Shown piece by piece: positions 310 to 15,548 of a stretch of 15,548 bases of DNA. The translations under genes were made by a program, and so were the position numbers. Under the pieces are notes generated by a model that did no database searches, had not been told where the DNA came from, and worked only from the letters and a program-made list of their open reading frames with translations. Each line of letters begins with the position of its first letter. The stretch's first letter is position 1. The DNA lies in the sequence record MK054233.1. One strand, given 5' to 3'.

Positions 310-682
310 CCTCACTTTTGCGAAAAACTGAATATGTGATACTTAGCAACTGTGAGGCTTTGGAAAATTTGTAATTGTATAACTGCTCACTAATTTATAC
401 AAGAGATACCCCTGTTTTGGGGGTATATCTAGAATAAATTAGTGAGGGTTGAGAAATTTGCATATTTTCCCGGCGGTCACTAATTTTTAGAAGAAACTGC
501 CAAAAAAAGAGGTCTACTTTAAACCCAATCTACAAAAGTTTAAATCAAATTTACAAAAGTTTAAAGTAGACCTACTCCAGAAAAAGTTGCTTGCAAAAAT
601 TAGTGAGGGTTGAGAAATTTACAGGGGACACCTCTTCCAGAAAAAGTTTCTTCTAAAAATTAGTGAGGCTTTGGAAAATTTG
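310..682. repeat. Non-coding array of nested direct and inverted repeats; candidate replication origin
   Basis: Identical 24-mer AAATTAGTGAGGGTTGAGAAATTT at 436-459 and 597-620. Identical 20-mer at 352-371 and 663-682. Perfect 22-bp IR at 477-498/645-666 and 15-bp IR at 510-524/559-573. Tandem 14-mer TACAAAAGTTTAAA at 531-544 and 552-565. 60-bp period unit at 571-620/631-681. The repeats are directly visible; the origin role is inferred. Confidence 0.85.
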
Positions 683-721
683 AAAATTTATAAGTGGTCG
701 CTGTTTTTTACTAGCATCTGT

Positions 722-741: not shown

Positions 742-1044
742 TTACCTTGAAAAAGCGTCGTTAAACTTCTTCTTAATTCTTAATAAACTATCTAGGTGTT
801 TTAATTCGAGTTCGTCAACAAGTAGCACTTTACCGTCTTTGAGCCTCAAAATATAGTAAATTTCATTTTCCTCTCTTTTCCACCCTATTATCTCATAGCT
901 GTCATCCGGTTCCATGTAACGAAATATCGGCGGGTCTACAGTCCTATCGATGTAAAGAAACGCCAAATGTAAACACTCTTTAGCCCTTTCTATCGTTTTC
1001 TCGTTAGCGATTATCCCGTCAAACTCTTTACAGGAACTCGACAT
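742..1044 (-). CDS. Hypothetical protein (~100 aa), last gene of the leftward operon
   Basis: Overlaps the helicase stop. A GGTGA SD motif precedes the ATG at 1044, which I prefer to the track start at 1053. Confidence 0.75.
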   Translation of the reverse strand: MSSSCKEFDGIIANEKTIERAKECLHLAFLYIDRTVDPPIFRYMEPDDSYEIIGWKREENEIYYILRLKDGKVLLVDELELKHLDSLLRIKKKFNDAFSR

Positions 1045-2626
1045 ATTCCTCACCGCCTACCATCTTGTGGTTTACTAAGCCCCTTTCTTCGGCCCATTTT
1101 AGTACTTTTTCTGCAATCTCCTCACCGAGTATGCCATAAAATTCGCTGATCGTGAACTGCTTCCCCTTTAACTCTTTGTAAATTTCTGCCATGTTACCCG
1201 CAAACGTCAAATCGCCGTTACCATCCCTCTCTTCTTTATAACCGTTCACGACAAGGTCTAATACCTTTTGTCCGAATTCATTACGCCTCCATTTATTCCT
1301 ATTCGCTTTGTCCTTGTCAAGGTCTACCAGCCCTTTACGTGATAGGTTGTAGAGCCATGCCTTTGCTGTCTCTGTATCGACCTTGAGTCTCATTGCTATA
1401 GTCTTCGTTTCTTCGAATTCGGTACTGGTAGCCTGTAACGCTTTCAGTTCGACACTCGTTAGCCCTACCGCTGATACTAGGAAGTACCTCAATAGCTTTT
1501 GTGAGAAAAGTGAGTAAACTTCATCATCAACTACTTCTTTCCCTAACAACGATGCAAATATCTTCATAACTTTTAGGCCTTGGTCGTAAACTCTAAACGC
1601 GTACTGGTTATACTCCGTTATCACTTTCTTGAACTTCATGGCTATTTCTTTGGGTAACTTGACACTCCTCGGTGTATAGTACATCCATGCTATAGCCAGG
1701 TATTTTGTCACGGGGTCATATTCAAACGCGTTATCGCCCCTCTCTGCTATCTTCTCATATATCTTGTCAGTATCACCCCTTTCCAAGTCTAAGGCAACTG
1801 TCAAAAACCTACTCATTATCTGCGTCACTTGGTCGTTACTGTAGTCGATGTTAACAGCAGTGCTGACTACTGATGGCGGGTAGTCAACAGTACCGTAGTT
1901 AGTACCTATTTCGCCGTCACCTGTTTTCGCTGTTAAATTCGCAAGTCTACCCTCAGTCATTAAAATGCTCAACTCCTTAAACGCCTCAATGTCAATTGTC
2001 TCGACAATGAACAAACAGCGGTTTTTTAGCAACTTGCCGTTATCGTTGAACGCAAGGTAACTAAGGGCTTTCCGCGTCAGGTTTGACACCCATAACACGG
2101 CTCCATATCCTTCTTTTAGACTAAACATGTTGACGATACTCTTTACTGCTGAAGACTTCCCTGCTCCTGCACTCCCTAATACAAGTACACCAATTTTAGG
2201 AAGTCCTTCGTAAAAAGCAGACTTAATGGCTATCAATGTCAAAAGTTTCACTTCATCATCTCCTATATGCCATTTTTCCGATTGTCGTAAGAACCATGAT
2301 ATAGGGTCTTTTCTCAGTTCTTCCCACTGTTCCGGGAATTCCTCCATTACCCATTCCTGTAAAGGTTTTTCTACCGTATTTTCCGCTAACACTTGTCTGA
2401 CAAACTCGTTGAATTTCTCTTTTTCCCTCTTTATTGATGTACACCCTCCTCTTTTGAACGTCCCTTCCGTTATAGGATATGCTGTTTCTTTTCCGTCTTT
2501 AATATATCTGTAACTCGGTACGATGTAAACTATGCCGTCGTCAATCGTGGCATAAGCGTCTTCCTCGTTTATTTCCACTTCGATCTCGGCGTTTACACAC
2601 TCACTATCATATTGGTACCTCTTCAT
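1028..2626 (-). CDS. MCM-like AAA+ ATPase, putative replicative helicase, with C-terminal winged-helix domains (532 aa)
   Basis: Walker A GSAGAGKS; Walker B variant CLFIVE; a LMTEGRLANLTAK...PPSVVSTA segment like the MCM PS1-hairpin/sensor-1 region; arginine finger MSRF; wHTH-like TIAMRLKVDTETAKAWLYNLSRKGLV. GGAGGT SD and ATGA coupling to the upstream gene. Confidence 0.8.
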   Translation of the reverse strand: MKRYQYDSECVNAEIEVEINEEDAYATIDDGIVYIVPSYRYIKDGKETAYPITEGTFKRGGCTSIKREKEKFNEFVRQVLAENTVEKPLQEWVMEEFPEQWEELRKDPISWFLRQSEKWHIGDDEVKLLTLIAIKSAFYEGLPKIGVLVLGSAGAGKSSAVKSIVNMFSLKEGYGAVLWVSNLTRKALSYLAFNDNGKLLKNRCLFIVETIDIEAFKELSILMTEGRLANLTAKTGDGEIGTNYGTVDYPPSVVSTAVNIDYSNDQVTQIMSRFLTVALDLERGDTDKIYEKIAERGDNAFEYDPVTKYLAIAWMYYTPRSVKLPKEIAMKFKKVITEYNQYAFRVYDQGLKVMKIFASLLGKEVVDDEVYSLFSQKLLRYFLVSAVGLTSVELKALQATSTEFEETKTIAMRLKVDTETAKAWLYNLSRKGLVDLDKDKANRNKWRRNEFGQKVLDLVVNGYKEERDGNGDLTFAGNMAEIYKELKGKQFTISEFYGILGEEIAEKVLKWAEERGLVNHKMVGGEEYVEFL

Positions 2627-3042
2627 TTTGACCTCCTTAGCTCGATAACCGGCTTATCGAAAATCACGCGTTCGCAGTTGGCTTTATCGAAACCGAGACC
2701 GAGTTCCTCTAACTTCTTCTCAATTTCTTCGATATTTTCCTTTAACTGTTGTCTCCTTTTGCCTTTTACGTCATTTAAGGGGCATCTGGCATTAAAGCAC
2801 CATTTAGCGTCTGAACACATTTCAGGTGTGCCGTCATCTAACGGTGGCTGAATAATAATATCATTAATAACTAAAGGTGCTAGGGGGTCATTATTAATAA
2901 ACGCTATACCTTTTTTGTAAGTGCAATACCCTATACTGTACTTCCTATTACCAAACCTCAAGACGTTGACATACCATATTATTTTATGGTGGTATTTTTC
3001 GGGGTGTGTCCACAAGTCCTTAATGTATTCGTGGAGATCCAT
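2623..3042 (-). CDS. Hypothetical protein with a Cys cluster (C-x5-C-x4-CP), possibly metal-binding
   Basis: 139-aa ORF with GGGGT SD, coupled within the operon; motif MCSDAKWCFNARCPLN. Confidence 0.85.
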   Translation of the reverse strand: MDLHEYIKDLWTHPEKYHHKIIWYVNVLRFGNRKYSIGYCTYKKGIAFINNDPLAPLVINDIIIQPPLDDGTPEMCSDAKWCFNARCPLNDVKGKRRQQLKENIEEIEKKLEELGLGFDKANCERVIFDKPVIELRRSK

Positions 3043-3045
3043 CGT

Positions 3046-3552
3046 TTACCCCTTTAGTTTTGGTTTAGCCTTTTTCGCTTCTTCTACCCTTTCTTCTGTT
3101 TTCTCTTCTGTCTCTTTCTCCTCCTCTTCTTGTCCTTCGCCGTCTAACACTAGTATCTCGTCGTAGAACGTCTTATTCTGCTTCTTAGACACCTTGATTT
3201 TTAGTTTTGTACCCTCAGTAATCTCTTTGTTCTGCCATGCGTCGTAGAGTACTTCATAAGCCCTACCTGTTAGCTTCATAATCGCTTTGCCTCCTAACTC
3301 TTGGGCGTCATATTTCTTCGGCTTTACAACTTCATCACCGTCTTCCGTCTTCGTAACGACTTTCTCCGTGACGCTCTCAAACTTTCCGCTTACCGGCTTT
3401 ACGATAATACTGTAGTCTTCGATCTTCTTCACTGTACCGTCTTTCAACGCTATTTCTCTCTCAACGGCCTTTGGTGATTGCAGCACTTCTACGGTTACTT
3501 CGTCGAACGGCTTAACAATCGGTAACCTTTCCCTTTTCATTAATACTTTCAT
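3046..3552 (-). CDS. Putative ssDNA-binding protein (beta-rich core with acidic/charged tail)
   Basis: Alternating hydrophobic beta-strand pattern; tail GEGQEEEEKETEEKTEERVEE; located upstream of a helicase. The gene is solid; the function is inferred. Confidence 0.6.
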   Translation of the reverse strand: MKVLMKRERLPIVKPFDEVTVEVLQSPKAVEREIALKDGTVKKIEDYSIIVKPVSGKFESVTEKVVTKTEDGDEVVKPKKYDAQELGGKAIMKLTGRAYEVLYDAWQNKEITEGTKLKIKVSKKQNKTFYDEILVLDGEGQEEEEKETEEKTEERVEEAKKAKPKLKG

Positions 3553-3734
3553 GCGTTAACACCCTCCTTTAATACCTCTTGTCTCTTCTTGTCGATATAC
3601 CCTCTGCTTAATGCTTCAATGATTAAGATCTCAATTGCATCTGTTAGAGTTAGCTTTTCTTGTTTAGCTAAAAAAACGAATTTTTCTTTAATTTCACGAT
3701 CTAATTTTATTCCTACATACTCTCTCTCTTTCAT
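3549..3734 (-). CDS. Ribbon-helix-helix (CopG-like) regulator, 61 aa
   Basis: MKEREYVGIKLDREIKEKFVFLAKQEKLTLTDAIEILIIEAL fits the RHH pattern. The track start at 3788 runs through the promoter; ATG at 3734 sits at leaderless distance from the TATA box. Confidence 0.8.
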   Translation of the reverse strand: MKEREYVGIKLDREIKEKFVFLAKQEKLTLTDAIEILIIEALSRGYIDKKRQEVLKEGVNA

Positions 3735-3746
3735 GGCCAATTTATA

Positions 3747-3786
3747 TTTAAACAACAAAAGCATAAAAGTTTTTTGGTGTTTAAAC
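3747..3786 (-). promoter_or_regulatory. T5-type early promoter (leftward)
   Basis: Minus strand ACCAAAAAA-CTTTTATGC (BRE plus TATA); 36/40 identical to the reverse complement of 4281-4320. Confidence 0.75.
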
Positions 3787-3795
3787 ATAATTAGG

Positions 3796-4233: not shown

Positions 4234-4280
4234 ATATCGCATATATAATTTATAGTTTAAATACCAAACGTTTTAGTGTT

Positions 4281-4320
4281 GTTTAAATACCAAAAAGTTT
4301 TTATACTTTTGTTGTTTAAA
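4281..4320 (+). promoter_or_regulatory. T6-type early promoter (rightward)
   Basis: ACCAAAAAG-TTTTTATAC (BRE plus TATA) upstream of 4342; inverted copy of 3747-3786. Confidence 0.75.
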
Positions 4321-5166: not shown

Positions 5167-5409
5167 ATGTATAGATGCCCACTCTGCGGGTTCAAAACCA
5201 TCAGGTTGTTTGCATTAAAACAACATGCACGCCATGTCCATGTGTTAACTGTTTGCCCAGTTTGCAAGAAGGAATATCTTAATATTTATCAACATTTCTA
5301 CGTCAATGCGTACAGCGACAACAAACATCTAGTTCTGTGCTATTTATTTACAACAAATAAGCTCAAGAGTTTCGCGAAACAAAAAGTGAAAGAACTCTTA
5401 AGGTGTTAG
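5167..5409 (+). CDS. a79: C2H2 zinc-finger protein, SSV1 A79 homologue
   Basis: CPLC...HARHVH and CPVC...H motifs; follows c80. Confidence 0.88.
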   Translation: MYRCPLCGFKTIRLFALKQHARHVHVLTVCPVCKKEYLNIYQHFYVNAYSDNKHLVLCYLFTTNKLKSFAKQKVKELLRC

Positions 5410-5411
5410 AT

Positions 5412-5714
5412 ATGATGATTTATGATATACTATTATATTATGGGTTTCAGTTCAATGACTATTGGACAACAATATTAGGTACCAAAGTTGGCGGAAGAGA
5501 AGCAAATCTTGTAGCGAGGTTGTTTATGAAAAACAGATTAACATTAGCTATCTATAAATTTGATCTCGCTACAGTGGCTCTATTATTAGCTTTCATGTTA
5601 GATAACGTAAAAATGATACAAACGTTCCTACTTATTGTTGATGTTGTTGAATGCCTTGTAACACTAAACAATACTCTTACGATATATAGGCGTAAGAAGG
5701 TGAGAGCAAAATGA
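5412..5714 (+). CDS. Small membrane protein (position of SSV1 C102b; DUF5658-like motif)
   Basis: Hydrophobic segments with DYWTT-x5-GGREAN; AGGTG SD before ATG 5412 (the track uses GTG 5403). Confidence 0.75.
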   Translation: MMIYDILLYYGFQFNDYWTTILGTKVGGREANLVARLFMKNRLTLAIYKFDLATVALLLAFMLDNVKMIQTFLLIVDVVECLVTLNNTLTIYRRKKVRAK

Positions 5715-5890
5715 GGAAATTATGGGTGGTTTCAGCAAAAGACCCTTACGGTGATATTGTTTATCTGAAAATAACGCCTAAAAAGTCTACTGCGAAACGG
5801 TATTTGAAAGAGTGCAAAGAGATTTTCAATAGTTGTGAAATGGTACTTGGTGAGTTCTACACTCTCGATGAGGCTGAGGGGAAAATATAA
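5711..5890 (+). CDS. Hypothetical protein, 59 aa (below the track cutoff)
   Basis: MRKLWVVSAKDPYGDIVYLKITPKKSTAKRYLKECKEIFNSCEMVLGEFYTLDEAEGKI; ATGA and TAATG overlaps fill the operon gap exactly. Confidence 0.82.
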   Translation: MRKLWVVSAKDPYGDIVYLKITPKKSTAKRYLKECKEIFNSCEMVLGEFYTLDEAEGKI

Positions 5891-6261
5891 TGTCAGGTAA
5901 TAAAAATTACCTGAGTAATCGTAAAACTTTAGGGATTCATGTGTCTGCAGAAGAACTAAAACGGTACCACTCTTTATCTGCAGAACAGAAAAGGTTGTTA
6001 AGGATAATCGTTAAGGTGCTTATTTATAACCCTGAATTGCTTAACGAAAGTTCTTATCTTTACAAATTACTCACCACAAAAGCTATATCGCCTTACGTTT
6101 GCCCCCTTTGCTTAATACCGTTTTCCTCTTCCGTTAGTCTGAAACAACACATTAGATATGCTGAACATACGACAACTTGCCCGGTGTGCGGTAAGGAGTT
6201 TGCAAAGACTGACGCACTCTTAGACCATGTTTGCAAAAAACATAATATCTGCGTTAGTTAG
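5890..6261 (+). CDS. b129: Tandem C2H2 zinc-finger DNA-binding protein, SSV1 B129 homologue
   Basis: YVCPLCLIPFSSSVSLKQHIRYAEH and CPVCGKEF...HVCKKH. Confidence 0.93.
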   Translation: MSGNKNYLSNRKTLGIHVSAEELKRYHSLSAEQKRLLRIIVKVLIYNPELLNESSYLYKLLTTKAISPYVCPLCLIPFSSSVSLKQHIRYAEHTTTCPVCGKEFAKTDALLDHVCKKHNICVS

Positions 6262-6270
6262 GTGATGTTG

Positions 6271-6603
6271 ATGAATAGGCTAAAGGTCTTATGGTTCATC
6301 TTCATTTTAGGTAATATTTATGATGTCGTAATATCGGCAATAGCGTGGAGGTATGGGGCTATGGAAATAAATCAAACTTTAATTGATTTAGGCTTATGGT
6401 ATGGTAACACATCATTTTTTTCAGTAATGGAAGCATTTGTTGGCGTCAAATTAATACTAATAGTTGGAGTTTATTGGTTACTAAAATTATTCGAAAAACT
6501 TGGAGTTAGTAAGTATGAATGGTTGGGATTGGCCCCATTCGCCATTGAAACAATTTTTGTTTTAATATATGATACTTATAATTTCGTAATGCATCTTTTT
6601 TAG
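6271..6603 (+). CDS. Three-helix membrane protein (DUF5658-like motif)
   Basis: Hydrophobic segments with YDVVIS-x5-YGAMEIN; GGTGA SD before ATG 6271. Confidence 0.8.
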   Translation: MNRLKVLWFIFILGNIYDVVISAIAWRYGAMEINQTLIDLGLWYGNTSFFSVMEAFVGVKLILIVGVYWLLKLFEKLGVSKYEWLGLAPFAIETIFVLIYDTYNFVMHLF

Positions 6604-6616
6604 GCCCTTTATAAAG
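6601..6616 (+). promoter_or_regulatory. Late promoter box (T3-type)
   Basis: TAGGCCCTTTATAAAG, ending 23 nt before ATG 6640; identical copies at 7799 and 11847. Confidence 0.85.
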
Positions 6617-6639
6617 TCTACCTTCTTTTTTCGCTTACA

Positions 6640-7539
6640 ATGAGGAAGACCCTTCTAGCTCTTCTAACCCTATCCCTAGCGTTACTAATGTTAACAACAC
6701 CTACCGGTGCTATAACTGCAAGTCAGTTAGGTGCAAATCAAATAGTATTTACGACTAATCAATTCTATATTGCCGGCGTTTCATATAGCAATGAGTGGTT
6801 TTCAGCCTTCTTCCATGGTTGGAACCCAATCGTATATGATGTTGAGGGTATCTATTTACGTAACATCTCTTTAGGGTACGTGAACAACCCTAATGGTAAT
6901 GGCTATAATGAAATATTTATAGGTATAGGGCTTAGTGCATATGCCACCGGGACTTTAGGAGGTGCCGGAACGCCGGGACAAATTATAAACAATGCAGTGT
7001 TGGCGGGCTTATATATTGTAACTACCAGTAGTGGATCCTATTATTATTATGTAGGCGCTGAAACATTACAAAATGGTAATCCTATAATTGCTAAAGATTC
7101 ACCACCCATAACCGGTTCTCTTCCAATAAGTGTGCAAACATATTTATATGATGATGGGAACGGAACTGCCACTGCGTATATAACATTATATTATTCATAT
7201 GGTCTACTGACATATAGTTTCTACGTCCCATATCCTTTTAATCCTAGTCAAGGATATGCCTCATATTCTGCACTCACTTTAATTGGTGCGATATTGCAAT
7301 TACCATATATTAGTGGAGGGCTAACGAGTTTCGATTTTACCTATCAAAGTAACGGGCAAAACTATGAATGGCCGAATCAGGTAGCCTCTGGTACTCAGAT
7401 CATGGCAGGGGTTTATAACATATCAAGTTCCGTAAACGAGTTTACACAAGTAAGTCTGTATAACGGTTTCTTAAATAATGGTTTGTGGTCTTACATCTAT
7501 AGTTTTACCTATCCATATCCTACCACACACGCACTCTAA
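6640..7539 (+). CDS. Secreted protein of the SSV1 A291 / SSV9 B310 locus (candidate killer toxin)
   Basis: Signal peptide MRKTLLALLTLSLALLML resembles that of A291; same position between b129 and vp4; body rich in G/S/T/Y/N. Confidence 0.75.
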   Translation: MRKTLLALLTLSLALLMLTTPTGAITASQLGANQIVFTTNQFYIAGVSYSNEWFSAFFHGWNPIVYDVEGIYLRNISLGYVNNPNGNGYNEIFIGIGLSAYATGTLGGAGTPGQIINNAVLAGLYIVTTSSGSYYYYVGAETLQNGNPIIAKDSPPITGSLPISVQTYLYDDGNGTATAYITLYYSYGLLTYSFYVPYPFNPSQGYASYSALTLIGAILQLPYISGGLTSFDFTYQSNGQNYEWPNQVASGTQIMAGVYNISSSVNEFTQVSLYNGFLNNGLWSYIYSFTYPYPTTHAL

Positions 7540-7555
7540 GGCAAAATTTTTTATC

Positions 7556-7566
7556 CTTTCTTTTTT
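7556..7566 (+). terminator. T-tract terminator after the A291-like gene
   Basis: CTTTCTTTTTT follows the stop at 7539. Confidence 0.55.
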
Positions 7567-7568
7567 AT

Positions 7569-7793
7569 ATGTTTAATCAAATGCCAACCGAGTCTATAAC
7601 AAACGTAACAAACGAGCCTATAATACCGTTTACGGTTAAGACTCATAACCCCTCCCCACCATCGCCGTTCCAAGTGGTTTATGATTACATCCCTACAATA
7701 ATTCTATCAATAGGAATAACCCTTTTAGTTTTAACAATCTATGTATCACCATCCCTCAGAATAGCATTAAGAAAATTCTTCGTAAGACGTTAA
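7569..7793 (+). CDS. Small single-pass membrane protein (start at 7569 or 7581)
   Basis: Pro/Thr-rich N-terminus, TM segment IILSIGITLLVLTIYV, basic tail RIALRKFFVRR; fills the gap before vp4. Confidence 0.75.
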   Translation: MFNQMPTESITNVTNEPIIPFTVKTHNPSPPSPFQVVYDYIPTIILSIGITLLVLTIYVSPSLRIALRKFFVRR

Positions 7794-7836: not shown

Positions 7837-10272
7837 ATGAAGTGGGGACTATCTTTACTACTACTAATCCTCTTACTCTCACCTATCTTAGCAAACGGTG
7901 TTATAACCGGGCCTCATCCATACTTAGATGGCGGAGGAGGTTTTACCGGGCCTTTCTTCAAATACTCTAACACAATTCAAGTTGGATCCTCTACTTTTTC
8001 TTCTAAATACAATGGTTCAACCCTTTCTACCGCACCATGGCTTAACCCGACTTACGTTTCGATATACAACACTTACTACCTTCAAGTTTTACCGAACCAA
8101 GAGTACATTTCAAATAACGTATCTCTTTCTCTTTCATCATCACAAATCGCTCTAAACGTCACATGGTTATTAGCGTCTTCCGGTAATTCCGGATCCTACG
8201 GTTCAATCGCCATAGGCTACGGTGTTAATTTTCCTTCAGGGTTTACGGGTAACTATGCACCCGCACCACCTTACGCCTCTGATGGGATTGTAGTTTATCT
8301 GGAAAAAGGGAGTTTCCCAACATATAGAATATTCGTATACTTTGATGGTGTGAAACAGTTAAACGTATCTGTGGGATCAATCAGTGTTGGGCAACAAATA
8401 GGTTTAGGGTTCTGGTACTTACCCGCTACAAACCAACTTTACGTTTATTACTATAACGGTACTCTAAAGACTTTTTCAATAACACCGGGTCAAGTTATCA
8501 ATAACCAATTTTATCCTCTTTCATTGAATACTATAAATAGTAATTATGTCATTGATGCTCAAAATGTTGGGCCGGGGTACGGTTACGGGCAGTGGGTGTT
8601 AATATCATACTCAATCTTCCAAACTAAGACATATAGTGCAACACTTAGCTATACATCTGTTATTTTAGGCAATGGTATTCAGGCTTTGGCGGGATTTACT
8701 GGTGCGTACAACCCTTTAAACGTGTCCACTAATGTGACCTCTTGGTCTGTTGTAGGTATCGTTAAGGTTGTAAATTATAGTGTTTCAAACTCACAATATT
8801 CATTGATCGGTAGTGTGAGTTACTTAACATCAACAAATACTGTTTACTTCATTCTTAATAGTATTTACCCCACATATAGTGTAAACACATGGTATCTTAA
8901 CGTAACGTTAGAGTTTCAGTTTGTAACGCCCTCAAGTACAGTCTACAAGAATATTACAATTCCGATTTTTGACGGGGGATTTGCGGTTCTTGTCCAAGTA
9001 AGCTTACCGCAATCATCATACCTATCAGGTCAAACTATCAGTGTTTCTAATTCTACAACTATTGAATATCCCTCTAATGCGGGATATTCGTTAGCCTTAA
9101 AACCGGTTGTAGAAATTAATATACAAGGTCTCACTAACGGCTTTGTGCCATTACCTTACACGGTTACTGCGAACGTTAACGCACAAACAACATATTATTA
9201 CGTTATAAACATACAATTCGGTCAATTCTCTCTAGGTGGTCAAACTGGTACAATAACAATATACCCCGTCAGCCAATTACCCGTTATATTCGTTTCACAA
9301 TATCCCACATCAGTTACGGCTGGTACTAAGGTGACTATAACTTTTCAATTCACTCTTAACACACCCGTTTCAAATGTGACAATGTCAGCGTTTAGCCAAT
9401 CCACTACGACTTTCGCATGGACTTACGCGTCTCTTTTATCGTCATCATCACTTGTGGAGTTTCAGGGGTACTGGCTATCAGCGAATGACGGAATCATAAT
9501 CATTACGCAAAGTCAAAACTATTTAATTCCCTTCAATTATGTAGGTTTGACGTTTTATAACAACAGTGTTAACACAATTCAGATTAACGTTGTAAATAAC
9601 GCGTTACAACTGAATGTTAATAATAACGTGCTAAACTTAGCTAACTCATCTAAAGTTATCGGTATAGGATTCTATTACGGTGCGGGGAAGTTAGTGTTAA
9701 ACTGGTTCTTTGTTAGCGGTATCGTTTTGCAGTCTGCCACTGCAAATCAGGCGTATACAATCTTAACGGGTACAAGTCTGAACACATTGACACAGTATAC
9801 GAATGGATACACTAACGCGTCAGGGTTTGGACAGGTAACCGTGACACTGACTGACACTCCTTACGAGTTAGTGGAAATCTACTGGGGTGGTCTGCAGAAA
9901 TACGTAATCCTAAACATTAGCGTCACTCAGCCTACTACAACTACAACTACGACTGTGAATACTTCAACATTAAACTACAACTACACTAATCCGTTTACTA
10001 ACAACATATCGCCTACCTCAACCCTTTACAACTTTAGCAATATGCAGCCATGGGCTGAACTAGTAGGGATAGTCATTGTAGTCGTCGTTACGTTACTAGG
10101 GTGGAAGTTTGGTGGAAAAGGTGGTGCTAGTGGTGGTGTAGTTATGGGGTTAATCGCCGTGTCCTATCTAGGTTTAGTGCCATGGTATATCTTCTACATC
10201 TTCATCTTTGGCATAGCGTTACTATTAGCGAAAATATTCGTAGATAGGTTTATGGGTGGTGAGGAGGAATGA
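7837..10272 (+). CDS. vp4: VP4 tail/host-adsorption glycoprotein (SSV1 C792 type), 811 aa
   Basis: Signal peptide; N-terminal GPHPY...GGGFTGPFF; many N-x-S/T sequons; Thr-rich linker; C-terminal TM helices; followed by b78. Confidence 0.93.
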   Translation: MKWGLSLLLLILLLSPILANGVITGPHPYLDGGGGFTGPFFKYSNTIQVGSSTFSSKYNGSTLSTAPWLNPTYVSIYNTYYLQVLPNQEYISNNVSLSLSSSQIALNVTWLLASSGNSGSYGSIAIGYGVNFPSGFTGNYAPAPPYASDGIVVYLEKGSFPTYRIFVYFDGVKQLNVSVGSISVGQQIGLGFWYLPATNQLYVYYYNGTLKTFSITPGQVINNQFYPLSLNTINSNYVIDAQNVGPGYGYGQWVLISYSIFQTKTYSATLSYTSVILGNGIQALAGFTGAYNPLNVSTNVTSWSVVGIVKVVNYSVSNSQYSLIGSVSYLTSTNTVYFILNSIYPTYSVNTWYLNVTLEFQFVTPSSTVYKNITIPIFDGGFAVLVQVSLPQSSYLSGQTISVSNSTTIEYPSNAGYSLALKPVVEINIQGLTNGFVPLPYTVTANVNAQTTYYYVINIQFGQFSLGGQTGTITIYPVSQLPVIFVSQYPTSVTAGTKVTITFQFTLNTPVSNVTMSAFSQSTTTFAWTYASLLSSSSLVEFQGYWLSANDGIIIITQSQNYLIPFNYVGLTFYNNSVNTIQINVVNNALQLNVNNNVLNLANSSKVIGIGFYYGAGKLVLNWFFVSGIVLQSATANQAYTILTGTSLNTLTQYTNGYTNASGFGQVTVTLTDTPYELVEIYWGGLQKYVILNISVTQPTTTTTTTVNTSTLNYNYTNPFTNNISPTSTLYNFSNMQPWAELVGIVIVVVVTLLGWKFGGKGGASGGVVMGLIAVSYLGLVPWYIFYIFIFGIALLLAKIFVDRFMGGEEE

Positions 10273-13255: not shown

Positions 13256-13720
13256 ATGGCTAAGAAGACAGAAGTAGAACAATTACAGAAAGAGAATAAT
13301 GAGTTAAAGAAAAAGTTAGCAGAGATAGAGAGTTTACTAAATAATAATAAGGAATTAGATGAGGATGAAAAGTTACAAGAGATAGAGAACCCCTACACGG
13401 TCACGAATAGGGCAATAACCGAGTTAGTAGAACCTAAGGACACAATGTTTTACCTTTCGGGGTCTCAGATATCACTGATTTTGACGGCGTTTGAGTTTGC
13501 AAGACTCCCTAGTTATTTCGGGGAAGAACCAGTTGTCGAGTTAGCGGAATTCGCTCACAAACTTAAGCACTATTTAGTTTCAAAGAGTGGAAGAGGAAGA
13601 AGGGATATACTGAGGGTACTTAGGGTGTCATCAGGTCAATCTAGGGAAAACGTGAATAAGAGTTTGATTAGTAAAATATTAAAGGGGACTGATATGGATG
13701 CCAAAGAAGAAGAAGGTTAA
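13256..13720 (+). CDS. a154: Core protein, SSV1 A154 homologue
   Basis: IENPYTVTNRAITELVEPKDTMFYLSG; 154 aa; position before b251. Confidence 0.92.
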   Translation: MAKKTEVEQLQKENNELKKKLAEIESLLNNNKELDEDEKLQEIENPYTVTNRAITELVEPKDTMFYLSGSQISLILTAFEFARLPSYFGEEPVVELAEFAHKLKHYLVSKSGRGRRDILRVLRVSSGQSRENVNKSLISKILKGTDMDAKEEEG

Positions 13721-14435
13721 ACATATCAATACGGGGCAGTTAGGGCAGATGATCATAAAAGAGATGCAAGAAAATGGTTTTCAAAGCATAATAATATTCG
13801 GTAAGCAAGGTGCGGGGAAAACTACTTACGCCCTAAAAGTAGGGGCAAGAATATTAATGTATTTATACCCAGAGCTTACTGAACATGACGCATGGTGGCA
13901 GGCATATAATCTTATGGTCTTTTCTCTAGATGAGGCAATAGAAAAACTGACAAGTGTAGTAAACACACATGAACAGGGTAATATAAACTATAGGTTACCA
14001 TTTTTGATAATTGATGACGCGAGCATTGACTTGATTAAATACGCATGGCATCAAGAACAAAATATCCAATTTGCTAAGTTATTTAACTTAGCTAGGACAT
14101 GGTCTACGGCATTAATTTTCACCACTCCATGGATAGATGACCTTCAGAAATTCTTAAGAGAGAAAGCATGGATAGTAGTGCAAGTACAAAAATTCGGGAA
14201 ATCTAAAGGAAACTATCCCCAGTCAATTGCATGGATATATAAGAGGACTATCAAATTGGTCAATGGGGAATTTAAGGGTAAATATGTAGAAAAATATTAC
14301 GATATCTTTAGGAGGGAAATGCCCAATGACCTTTATGAAGAATATATTAAAAGACGTGATAAGGTAATGGCGAAAATAGCGAGTGAGGTACTTGCTATAC
14401 TTAGGGAAAAAGCCTCAAAAGTACCAAGTACATAA
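13698..14435 (+). CDS. b251: P-loop ATPase, SSV1 B251 homologue
   Basis: Walker A GKQGAGKT, Walker B LIIDD; last gene before the convergent int. Confidence 0.94.
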   Translation: MPKKKKVKHINTGQLGQMIIKEMQENGFQSIIIFGKQGAGKTTYALKVGARILMYLYPELTEHDAWWQAYNLMVFSLDEAIEKLTSVVNTHEQGNINYRLPFLIIDDASIDLIKYAWHQEQNIQFAKLFNLARTWSTALIFTTPWIDDLQKFLREKAWIVVQVQKFGKSKGNYPQSIAWIYKRTIKLVNGEFKGKYVEKYYDIFRREMPNDLYEEYIKRRDKVMAKIASEVLAILREKASKVPST

Positions 14436-14697: not shown

Positions 14698-14769
14698 TAG
14701 GGGTACCGGGGTTAAGGTACCCTATGGGGTACCGATGTACCCCCATGGGTGCCGGGTTCAGCCCGGCAC
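14698..14769. other. Three consecutive GC-rich hairpins at the int stop
   Basis: TAGGGGTACC/GGTACCCTA, ATGGGGTAC/GTACCCCCAT, and a perfect GTGCCGGG-TTCAG-CCCGGCAC. Confidence 0.7.
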
Positions 14770-15548
14770 TTTGGACAGCCATTCCGCGTACTTCTTATAC
14801 TCTTTTTTCGCTAAAGCGTATAAGTCCAAATAATGTTTTGTTAGCACGTCACTAGGTGTTCGTCCTTCTATGAAATCTATGACTTGACTTGGTATTTCCA
14901 ATTCCGCCATTTTTGTTGCCACGAATTTGCGAAAATATTTAGGCGGGACTAAGTTCAACCTCCTTATCGCACTGGTAATCTGTCCTTCAGTTATCTTTAT
15001 TTTCCGTAGAGGCGTGATGTGGAATAGGTAGAAACTCTTCTTTTGCCCCCTGACCCAATTGAGGACGTAAATACTAAAGCCGTCCTCATTAATTTCGTTT
15101 TTCTCGTCATAATTGCTTAGGACTTTAAGCACTTCTCTTTCTCTTCCGCCCGACTCTAAAAGTAGTCTGTAAAACGTGTATAACGCGTAGTTATCCCTTA
15201 CCGCGTTGAGGGTCTTCCAGACTTCTTCTAATGTCGGCACGCGTAAGTCCGGTTTCGTCTTTTTCGGTTTCAGGTCTTTAGGCGGGTCTTTGTTCAGCAC
15301 GAGTTTGTAGAAATTCCTCCACGCTTTGATGCAATTATTCGATTCTTTTCTTCCTTGCTTAACGCACGAGATATATTTCTTTATTGTCTCTTCACTGATA
15401 TTCTTACTACGTAAAGCAATTTCGAATTTGAGTAAATCACTTGCGGAAATTTCAGAGTTGTTAGAAAGCGTTAGATTAGAGTCAATTATTCTAACTCCTT
15501 TCAATTCATCATAATTAGCATTGGGGGTCTTAGGGGGTGTCCCCCCTA
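14758..15548 (-). CDS. int: SSV-type tyrosine integrase, catalytic C-terminal part (intC)
   Basis: Motifs ESGGR, PKYFRKF, FIEGR and TKHY match the R-K-R-R-Y catalytic set of SSV1 D335. The frame is open from the track's TTG at 15504 up to the window end. Confidence 0.96.
   Translation of the reverse strand, partial: GGTPPKTPNANYDELKGVRIIDSNLTLSNNSEISASDLLKFEIALRSKNISEETIKKYISCVKQGRKESNNCIKAWRNFYKLVLNKDPPKDLKPKKTKPDLRVPTLEEVWKTLNAVRDNYALYTFYRLLLESGGREREVLKVLSNYDEKNEINEDGFSIYVLNWVRGQKKSFYLFHITPLRKIKITEGQITSAIRRLNLVPPKYFRKFVATKMAELEIPSQVIDFIEGRTPSDVLTKHYLDLYALAKKEYKKYAEWLSKVPG
15531..15548. repeat. Hairpin/palindrome flanking att on the left (across the junction)
   Basis: TAGGGGG-TGTC-CCCCCTA. 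Confidence 0.75.

Follow-up and report, generated by a model that had tools for sequence, protein, structure and literature searches.

The 15.5-kb window examined here, i.e., the whole of sequence record MK054233.1 (15,548 nucleotides), is the complete genome of a Sulfolobus islandicus fusellovirus, and the 532-aa AAA+ ATPase encoded on its minus strand (hereafter, P0001) is probably a divergent, minimal MCM-type ATPase (superfamily 6, AAA+ clade 7) that acts as the plasmid-type initiator-helicase of an accessory replication module. When a phage collection was searched using tblastn, P0001 showed a full-length match to MK054233.1 with 100% identity, and the protein is also 100% identical to a 'hypothetical protein' in MK054233 and MK054231. 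The open reading frames (ORFs) listed for the window included the usual fusellovirus set, namely a VP4-like protein of 811 aa, small hydrophobic proteins resembling VP1 and VP3, and a B277 homologue. The mechanism of fusellovirus DNA replication is unsettled, and to our knowledge, the only widely shared fusellovirus ATPase is the DnaA-like B251 protein, a homologue of which is also encoded in the window (Table 1). No SSV origin has been functionally characterised, according to a study on SSV10 (PMC6080066).

The P0001 ORF is a real, conserved gene. Its close homologues (n = 34, 68–95% identity) were found in metagenomes, the Acidianus manzaensis chromosome, and SSV-K1, while HMMER, run exhaustively against 1.84 billion cluster representatives, retrieved only 38 relatives at E ≤ 0.001, many of which were 600–860 aa long with other N-termini. 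The existence of these 34 close homologues and 38 cluster representatives means that the ORF did not arise by chance. The start of the gene overlaps an upstream 139-aa ORF by 4 nt, suggesting operon-internal, coupled translation. Scanning for bacterial promoters and terminators was uninformative because the virus is archaeal.

The assignment to MCM is supported by the predicted fold. In an AlphaFold2 model built from a 35-sequence alignment (84.3 in the predicted local distance difference test [pLDDT] and 0.74 in the predicted template modelling [pTM] score), the best 11 structural matches were all MCM chains, followed by RavA (Z = 16.5), BchI (16.4), a MoxR-family protein (14.8), BrxL (13.5), Cch (12.7), and ComM (12.1). 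RavA and BchI are members of the AAA+ clade that includes MCM. The top matches obtained using Foldseek were MCM2-7 and archaeal MCM (E ~1e-10), RuvB was matched at 7e-9, and no Orc or Cdc6 chain was present in the top 50 structural matches. An earlier note, made from the nucleotide sequence without database searches, had named a grouping with MoxR or Lon-like clades as an outcome that speaks against a helicase; what was found is that the 11 MCM chains came first, with a modest margin of ~3 Z units over the MoxR and chelatase ATPases. The helical lid of the model (residues 305–383) carries a conserved Arg 345, and no superfamily 3 chain was found among the matches listed, the list being filled by MCM and MarR chains.

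Profile comparison pointed in the same direction. Using hhalign, the family profile was aligned with a genuine MCM (ORF35 of Halorubrum virus BJ1) over 179 columns (E = 0.0019), where the low probability is attributable to the template being a single sequence. The aligned span covered the G..K helix before Walker A, Walker A itself, and the helix after Walker B, and Arg 273 of P0001 corresponded to the SRF arginine of the BJ1 MCM. As for the controls, the Cdc6-like ORF16 of BJ1 was aligned over 38 P-loop columns only, and the alignment with the virus's own B251 homologue was restricted to the P-loop. Neither P0001, for which no match was detected at E ≤ 1 and which thus falls below the gathering cut-off, nor the nearest virus record matched the Pfam MCM family (PF00493). 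The full-length relative P0040, encoded on a metagenomic contig, exceeded the cut-off of that family (27.7 vs 23.3 bits), and 8 of the 35 family members matched it at E < 0.01. Single-sequence searches returned only sub-threshold DUF815 and AAA matches in Pfam, nothing useful in NCBIfam or among PDB sequences, and only an unnamed family in PHROGs.

P0001 and MCM have in common the G..K helix, Walker A, the helix after Walker B, the pre-sensor-1 hairpin, the SRF arginine finger, the lid arginine, and a winged helix after the ATPase. Unlike MCM, P0001 has no N-terminal tier (i.e., no helical subdomain, zinc finger, or OB fold), no helix-2 insert hairpin in the predicted model, and no DE pair in Walker B, and its winged helix is of the MarR type and is followed by a second one. 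In the AlphaFold2 model, strands 228–236 and 239–247, which follow helix 3 and precede strand 4, form the pre-sensor-1 hairpin; a basic residue occurs at or next to the position of Lys 234 in most relatives. Strands 2 and 3 (residues 177–180 and 204–207, respectively) are separated in the predicted model by 23 residues that contain two short helices only, and this region is 4 residues shorter in the relatives than in P0001. The Walker B sequence LFIVE, which the earlier note had read in place of hhhhDE, was confirmed; V208 pairs with the MCM aspartate and E209 with the catalytic glutamate, leaving no DE pair. Among 25 distant relatives, the same two positions were occupied by E-Q (15/25), E-E, or x-E; thus, the oddity is a family trait and not an error in the P0001 copy. 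Only one acidic Walker B residue is reliably kept in the whole family. Both the Walker B geometry and the helix-2 region were assessed from DSSP strings and alignments only.

The domains on either side of the ATPase were partly as anticipated. The short N-terminus was indeed devoid of a zinc finger, an OB fold, and a primase motif, and residues 1–95 form an orphan domain, restricted to the close clade, for which no structural relatives were found when it was folded alone. Its interpretation as a reduced OB fold or a primase remnant was rejected because the isolated fold had no structural relative. Regarding the two proposed C-terminal winged helices, the first was corroborated as a MarR-type domain and is likely a sequence-specific DNA binder. 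The second (residues 474–532, hereafter, the terminal domain) shows the canonical H-S-H-H-S-S winged-helix order in the model (pLDDT 79–87) and had no match in a Pfam search, so that this part of the claim stands as model topology; its language-model look-alikes were all below the threshold (<0.9) and are treated as leads only.

Self-association was also predicted. The trimer prediction for residues 95–390 scored 0.49, compared with 0.28 for the best control; of 30 solved homo-pairs, 20 attained this mark, as did 1 of 23 single chains. Trimer runs shared at least 85% of contacts, and the pLDDT of the partner was at least 78. In the predicted interface, residues 154 and 208–209 of one copy face helix 3, the hairpin, and the lid (residues 321–355, including 344–345) of its neighbour. 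This is the arrangement expected of an MCM-like ring, in which the lid would act in trans.

The family to which P0001 belongs is one of mobile-element replication proteins. The precomputed Pfam domain PF27228 was present in P0001 and 30 of the 33 other homologues listed; this P-loop domain, 'MTBMA_p00010_2nd', is named after a Methanothermobacter marburgensis plasmid protein. The nearest structure clusters in the ESM Atlas consisted of 63–100% PF27228 in eight of ten rows and 26–32% in two, and the template modelling (TM) scores by query were ≤0.75. One PF27228 cluster was archaeal and contained TrmB winged helices (TM 0.75 by query), and in several bacterial and tailed-phage clusters the domain was fused to Prim-Pol/PriCT, an NrS-1-type helix bundle, or a Toprim/DnaG primase. 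P0001 possesses a winged helix and lacks the primase domain that is common in its structural neighbours. These fusions bear out the likeness to the helicase halves of mobile-element primase-helicase fusions suggested from the sequence, in line with a previous study in which C674 of ASV1 was linked to the helicase part of a prim-pol fusion and was proposed to initiate viral DNA replication (Makarova et al. 2014, PMC4158269). In a survey by Kazlauskas et al. 2016 (PMC4889955), the viral MCM-like helicases comprised only those of BJ1 and TPV1 and divergent bacteriophage and archaeal halovirus members obtained by profile comparison, and fuselloviruses were unmentioned among them.

The viral homologues were A460 and C78 of SSV-K1 (82% identity), gp57 of YNP1 (37%), C674 of ASV1 and B471 of SSV7 (~27%), and those of other SSVs; the ASV1 record itself remarks on the similarity of C674, B471, A460, and Msed_2283. 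The SSV-K1, YNP1, ASV1, and SSV7 proteins share both family and module with P0001, but their genes directly follow a gene for a Rad3/XPD-like helicase, which this virus lacks. The ASV1, SSV7, and YNP1 homologues further differ in having other N-termini and no P0001 terminal domain, and the SSV-K1 copy is annotated as two ORFs. At positions 6100–7712 of SSV-K1 (NC_005361), A460 and C78 match the 532-aa ORF end to end, with 82 and 85% identity, respectively; as judged from this match, the split probably reflects a frameshift or sequencing error and not two genes. The RefSeq label 'DNA helicase' in SSV-K1 was considered as a pointer to a P0001 homologue and rejected, as it denotes B494, a Rad3/XPD-like superfamily 2 (SF2) helicase absent from the window.

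The only plasmid match to P0001 was in pSSVi, a 5.7-kb fusellovirus satellite of Saccharolobus solfataricus P2. The homologue, ORF735 (735 aa), is by far the largest ORF of this plasmid, its integrase included, and was reportedly characterised as a replication protein that lacks a primase domain (Wang et al. 2007, Virology). Homology extends over residues 91–532 of P0001 in the same order (ATPase, winged helix, and terminal domain), with identities of 30, 28, and 56%, respectively. ORF735 differs in its own ~200-aa N-terminal extension and a ~115-aa insert before the terminal domain, and it resides on a plasmid with copG-type control, whereas P0001 is encoded by a virus. The terminal domain showed 56% identity to ORF735 (residues 682–735) and 64% to the metagenomic protein P0038 (residues 618–675), compared with 30–32% for the ATPase cores, and no BLAST match was obtained between winged helix 1 and P0038. 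From this mosaic we infer that winged helix 1 may diverge with each element's own DNA sites and that the terminal domain may be held constant by a common partner, of which a host replisome protein is the simplest candidate; the conservation of the terminal domain could alternatively stem from a recent exchange of domains. A 55-nt inverted repeat with 82% complementarity and a 9-nt loop lies at positions 482–600 of pSSVi, within the 5′ part of the ORF735 coding sequence, and could serve as an origin element inside the rep gene.

The gene neighbourhood is that of a conserved module. The order of the minus-strand operon is an F93-like winged-helix gene, a ribbon-helix-helix (RHH)-like 79-aa gene, a C158-like 168-aa gene, the 139-aa ORF, the ATPase gene, and a 103-aa ORF, beyond which lies a repeat region. 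A 21-kb metagenomic contig (L002) presented the same gene order around P0040, minus the 139-aa ORF. In SSV-K1, ASV1, SSV7, YNP1, and an Acidianus provirus, a Rad3/XPD-like SF2 helicase gene lies directly upstream of the ATPase gene; it was absent from this virus and apparently also from the other 13 S. islandicus SSV records, which had no B494 matches and contained the 139-aa ORF. Since the ATPase is kept with or without the Rad3-like helicase, it is the constant element of the module. This accessory replication module, consisting of the RHH protein, the C158-like protein, the Rad3-like helicase or 139-aa ORF, the ATPase, and the 103-aa protein, is common to SSV-K1, ASV1, SSV7, YNP1, and metagenomic relatives.

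The 103-aa gene, whose position after the ATPase gene is conserved, likely encodes a partner protein. BLAST linked the 103-aa protein only with the 102-aa protein of L002 (6455–6763), and B119 of ASV1 (5341–5700) with gp58 of YNP1 (5347–5787). All four proteins contain a Cys-containing motif, C-h-[HR]-h-A-x-x-Y-h-[DE], that was read by eye. The 139-aa ORF had no Pfam or PHROG family and was found only in 14 S. islandicus SSV records. The tail of the C158-like 168-aa protein is strongly acidic and rich in Glu and Lys.

The non-coding repeat region next to the 103-aa gene is a candidate origin. The box TTAGTGAGG occurred eight times in the window against 3.6 expected, a count equalled by 8 of 200 shuffles, and the overall enrichment is therefore weak; what counts is the clustering of the boxes at 385–668 and not their total number. 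The box was not found in the relatives. A similar repeat architecture was present at 8208–8600 of SSV-K1, ~500 bp beyond its copy of the ATPase gene, where AATTAGGAGA boxes occur instead; the two ATPases are 82% identical.

Several known systems offer points of comparison. The MCM-AAA-only protein BcMCM, from a Bacillus cereus prophage, is an active 3′–5′ helicase (PMC2715239). As compared by description, BcMCM (PMC2715239, PMC3273815) and P0001 are both encoded by mobile elements and homologous only to MCM's AAA+ region, without the MCM N-terminus, but BcMCM has an N-terminal primase-like segment where P0001 has the 95-aa orphan domain, and P0001 has two winged helices. The self-loading SCCmec helicases Cch and Cch2 (PMC7581432; PDB 5dgk) showed far weaker similarity than MCM proper and have other flanking domains. 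Orc1/Cdc6 and Rep proteins of the pRN1 ORF904 type share with P0001 the logic of an AAA+ ATPase followed by a winged helix that starts the replication of a small replicon. At the profile level, however, only the P-loop region is common to P0001 and Orc1/Cdc6-type proteins, and ORF904 combines a prim-pol with a superfamily 3 helicase (PMC4158269), whereas the P0001 model has an MCM-like helical lid with a sensor-2 arginine.

In the proposed mechanism, P0001 would serve as the virus's plasmid-type replication protein, with winged helix 1 recognising the repeated boxes in the neighbouring non-coding region. The ATPase would form a ring with ATP sites between subunits, to which one subunit would contribute the Walker motifs and its neighbour Arg 273 and the lid Arg 345. 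In the pore, the pre-sensor-1 hairpins would then pull the DNA, opening and unwinding it, probably in the 3′ to 5′ direction like MCM and BcMCM, while the conserved terminal domain would dock a component of the host replisome. Of this scheme, the fold, the motifs, the membership of the family, the neighbouring genes, and a predicted self-association are established, whereas binding to the origin, unwinding, and docking to the host are inferred. The proposal of the earlier note that one chain combines origin recognition and unwinding is plausible in view of the winged helix, of the iterons next to the module, and of the homology to pSSVi. A bolder version is that P0001 is a self-sufficient minimal initiator-helicase, which recognises its own iteron origin via the MarR-type winged helix, loads itself, and unwinds, the terminal domain being its plug into the host replisome. 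We regard this version as possible but somewhat doubtful; if true, it would define an origin together with its initiator for the first time in a fusellovirus and set a lower limit to the parts that an MCM motor requires.

A number of observations weigh against P0001 being an initiator-helicase. With a single acidic Walker B residue, the aspartate position being apparently occupied by valine, ATP hydrolysis could be slow or nil. The helix-2 insert, which contributes to unwinding in MCM, has no hairpin counterpart in the predicted model, and there is no OB or zinc tier to hold DNA and stabilise a hexamer. MoxR/chelatase ATPases trail MCM by just ~3 Z units in the structural comparison, and the trimer result, which is a prediction and not a demonstration of binding, may reflect the model's memory of AAA+ rings. 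In the best-known relatives, the adjacent Rad3/XPD-like helicase might do the unwinding. The gene is also missing from most fuselloviruses, including SSV1 and SSV2, and fusellovirus replication in general therefore does not depend on it; we found no assay of any member of exactly this family in the literature.

Part of this evidence would suit an initiator or loader that does not translocate, i.e., an ATP-dependent switch like Orc1/Cdc6 or DnaA that would bind to and remodel the viral origin and then recruit a separate helicase, either the host MCM or, in the relatives, the adjacent Rad3/XPD-like enzyme. The degenerate Walker B (V-E here and E-Q in 15 of the 25 distant relatives) resembles hydrolysis-slowing mutants and the helix-2 insert is missing, but P0001 retains the pre-sensor-1 hairpin with its basic residue, together with both the arginine finger and the arginine of the lid. 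The winged helix after the ATPase is of a sequence-specific type, as in Orc1/Cdc6; however, the fold and the alignable motifs follow MCM, and the Cdc6-like protein could be aligned over the 38 P-loop columns only. The pairing with a Rad3-like helicase gene, observed in SSV-K1, ASV1, SSV7, YNP1, and the Acidianus provirus, is countered by the 14 viruses that keep the ATPase gene without it, and the primase fusions within the family are a usual helicase signature. We therefore consider an initiator without helicase activity unlikely, although it deserves more weight than the two remaining explanations.

It seems improbable that P0001 takes no direct part in replication and is instead a MoxR/chelatase-like remodelling ATPase or an ATP-dependent regulator of transcription. 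The commonest weak Pfam match was DUF815, an uncharacterised AAA+ family, and the RHH protein and F93-like winged helix are transcription-factor-like members of the operon, but all 11 best structural matches were MCM chains, PF27228 is fused to primases, no other ORF of pSSVi, a small self-replicating plasmid, comes near the homologue in size, and no VWA partner gene, as is typical of MoxR systems, was found in the window. Least probable of all is a DNA translocase that uses an MCM-like motor for packaging, segregation, or anti-defence, given that pSSVi has a homologue yet no virion genes of its own, that the neighbours are DNA-binding and replication-type genes with iterons alongside, and that a gene of its own encodes the B251 homologue, the ATPase universal to fuselloviruses.

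The family has an existing Pfam entry, and attention had been drawn to its fusellovirus members in 2009 and 2014. The new elements are the explicit placement of this lineage with the MCM type, a map of the motifs, a module that lacks the Rad3-like helicase, and the conserved terminal domain that P0001 and pSSVi have in common. The result is thus a gain in annotation and a good experimental lead rather than a new kind of system. The compact module, comprising the initiator-helicase candidate, its small partners, and the iterons, is testable as a minimal replicon in Sulfolobus and may yield a new shuttle-vector origin. P0001 also represents a natural experiment in the reduction of the MCM motor, with the N-terminal tier, the helix-2 insert, and the Walker B aspartate gone.

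Table 1. Coordinates of the ATPase gene, its domains and motifs, and neighbouring features in MK054233.1
Feature	Position	Strand	Remarks
Non-coding repeat region, candidate origin	350..715		TTAGTGAGG boxes in direct and inverted order; nested inverted repeats
103-aa gene downstream of the ATPase gene	742..1053	-	Overlaps the ATPase gene by 26 nt; homologue is the 102-aa gene after P0040 in L002 (E 2e-13)
Complete ATPase gene (532 aa; AAA+ core followed by two winged-helix domains)	1028..2626	-	Stop-free translation
Winged-helix-shaped domain 2, residues 474-532	1031..1207	-	Model topology
Winged helix 1, residues 384-462	1241..1477	-	MarR/TrmB type
AAA+ ATPase core and helical lid, residues 96-383	1478..2341	-	MCM-like
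Sensor-2 candidate Arg 345, lid	1592..1594	-	Arg in 20/25 distant relatives
Arginine finger candidate Arg 273, SRF motif	1808..1810	-	Arg in 24/25 distant relatives
Sensor-1 candidate Thr 256	1859..1861	-	Ends strand 252-257; Thr in 23/25 distant relatives
Pre-sensor-1 beta hairpin, residues 228-247	1886..1945	-	From the model; Lys 234 in LTAKTG
Non-canonical Walker B LFIVE, residues 205-209	2000..2014	-	Alignment register uncertain by one residue
Walker A GSAGAGKS, residues 151-158	2153..2176	-	G151, G156, and K157 nearly invariant across the family
N-terminal domain, residues 1-95	2342..2626	-	Four-stranded beta sheet and long helix; confined to this clade
139-aa ORF	2623..3042	-	Contains Cys, with a C-x5-C-x4-C stretch; occupies the slot of the Rad3/XPD-like helicase in SSV-K1, ASV1, SSV7, and YNP1
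Shine-Dalgarno-like GGAGGT	2631..2636	-	4 nt upstream of the ATG; read directly
168-aa C158-like gene	3046..3552	-	phrog_21681 (unknown function); conserved module member
79-aa gene	3549..3788	-	First conserved module member; weak RHH_1 match (E 0.054); homologous to an 89-aa gene of L002
DnaA-like B251 homologue	13698-14435		Universal fusellovirus ATPase; gene separate from that of P0001

Two further features of the window were observed. A 41-nt inverted repeat (90% complementary; 3747–3787 and 4280–4320) brackets the F93-like winged-helix gene. The integrase gene, located on the minus strand, spans the window ends (2–226 and 14758–15546); this interruption results from the linearisation of a circular genome inside the gene, and a provirus-type split is excluded.

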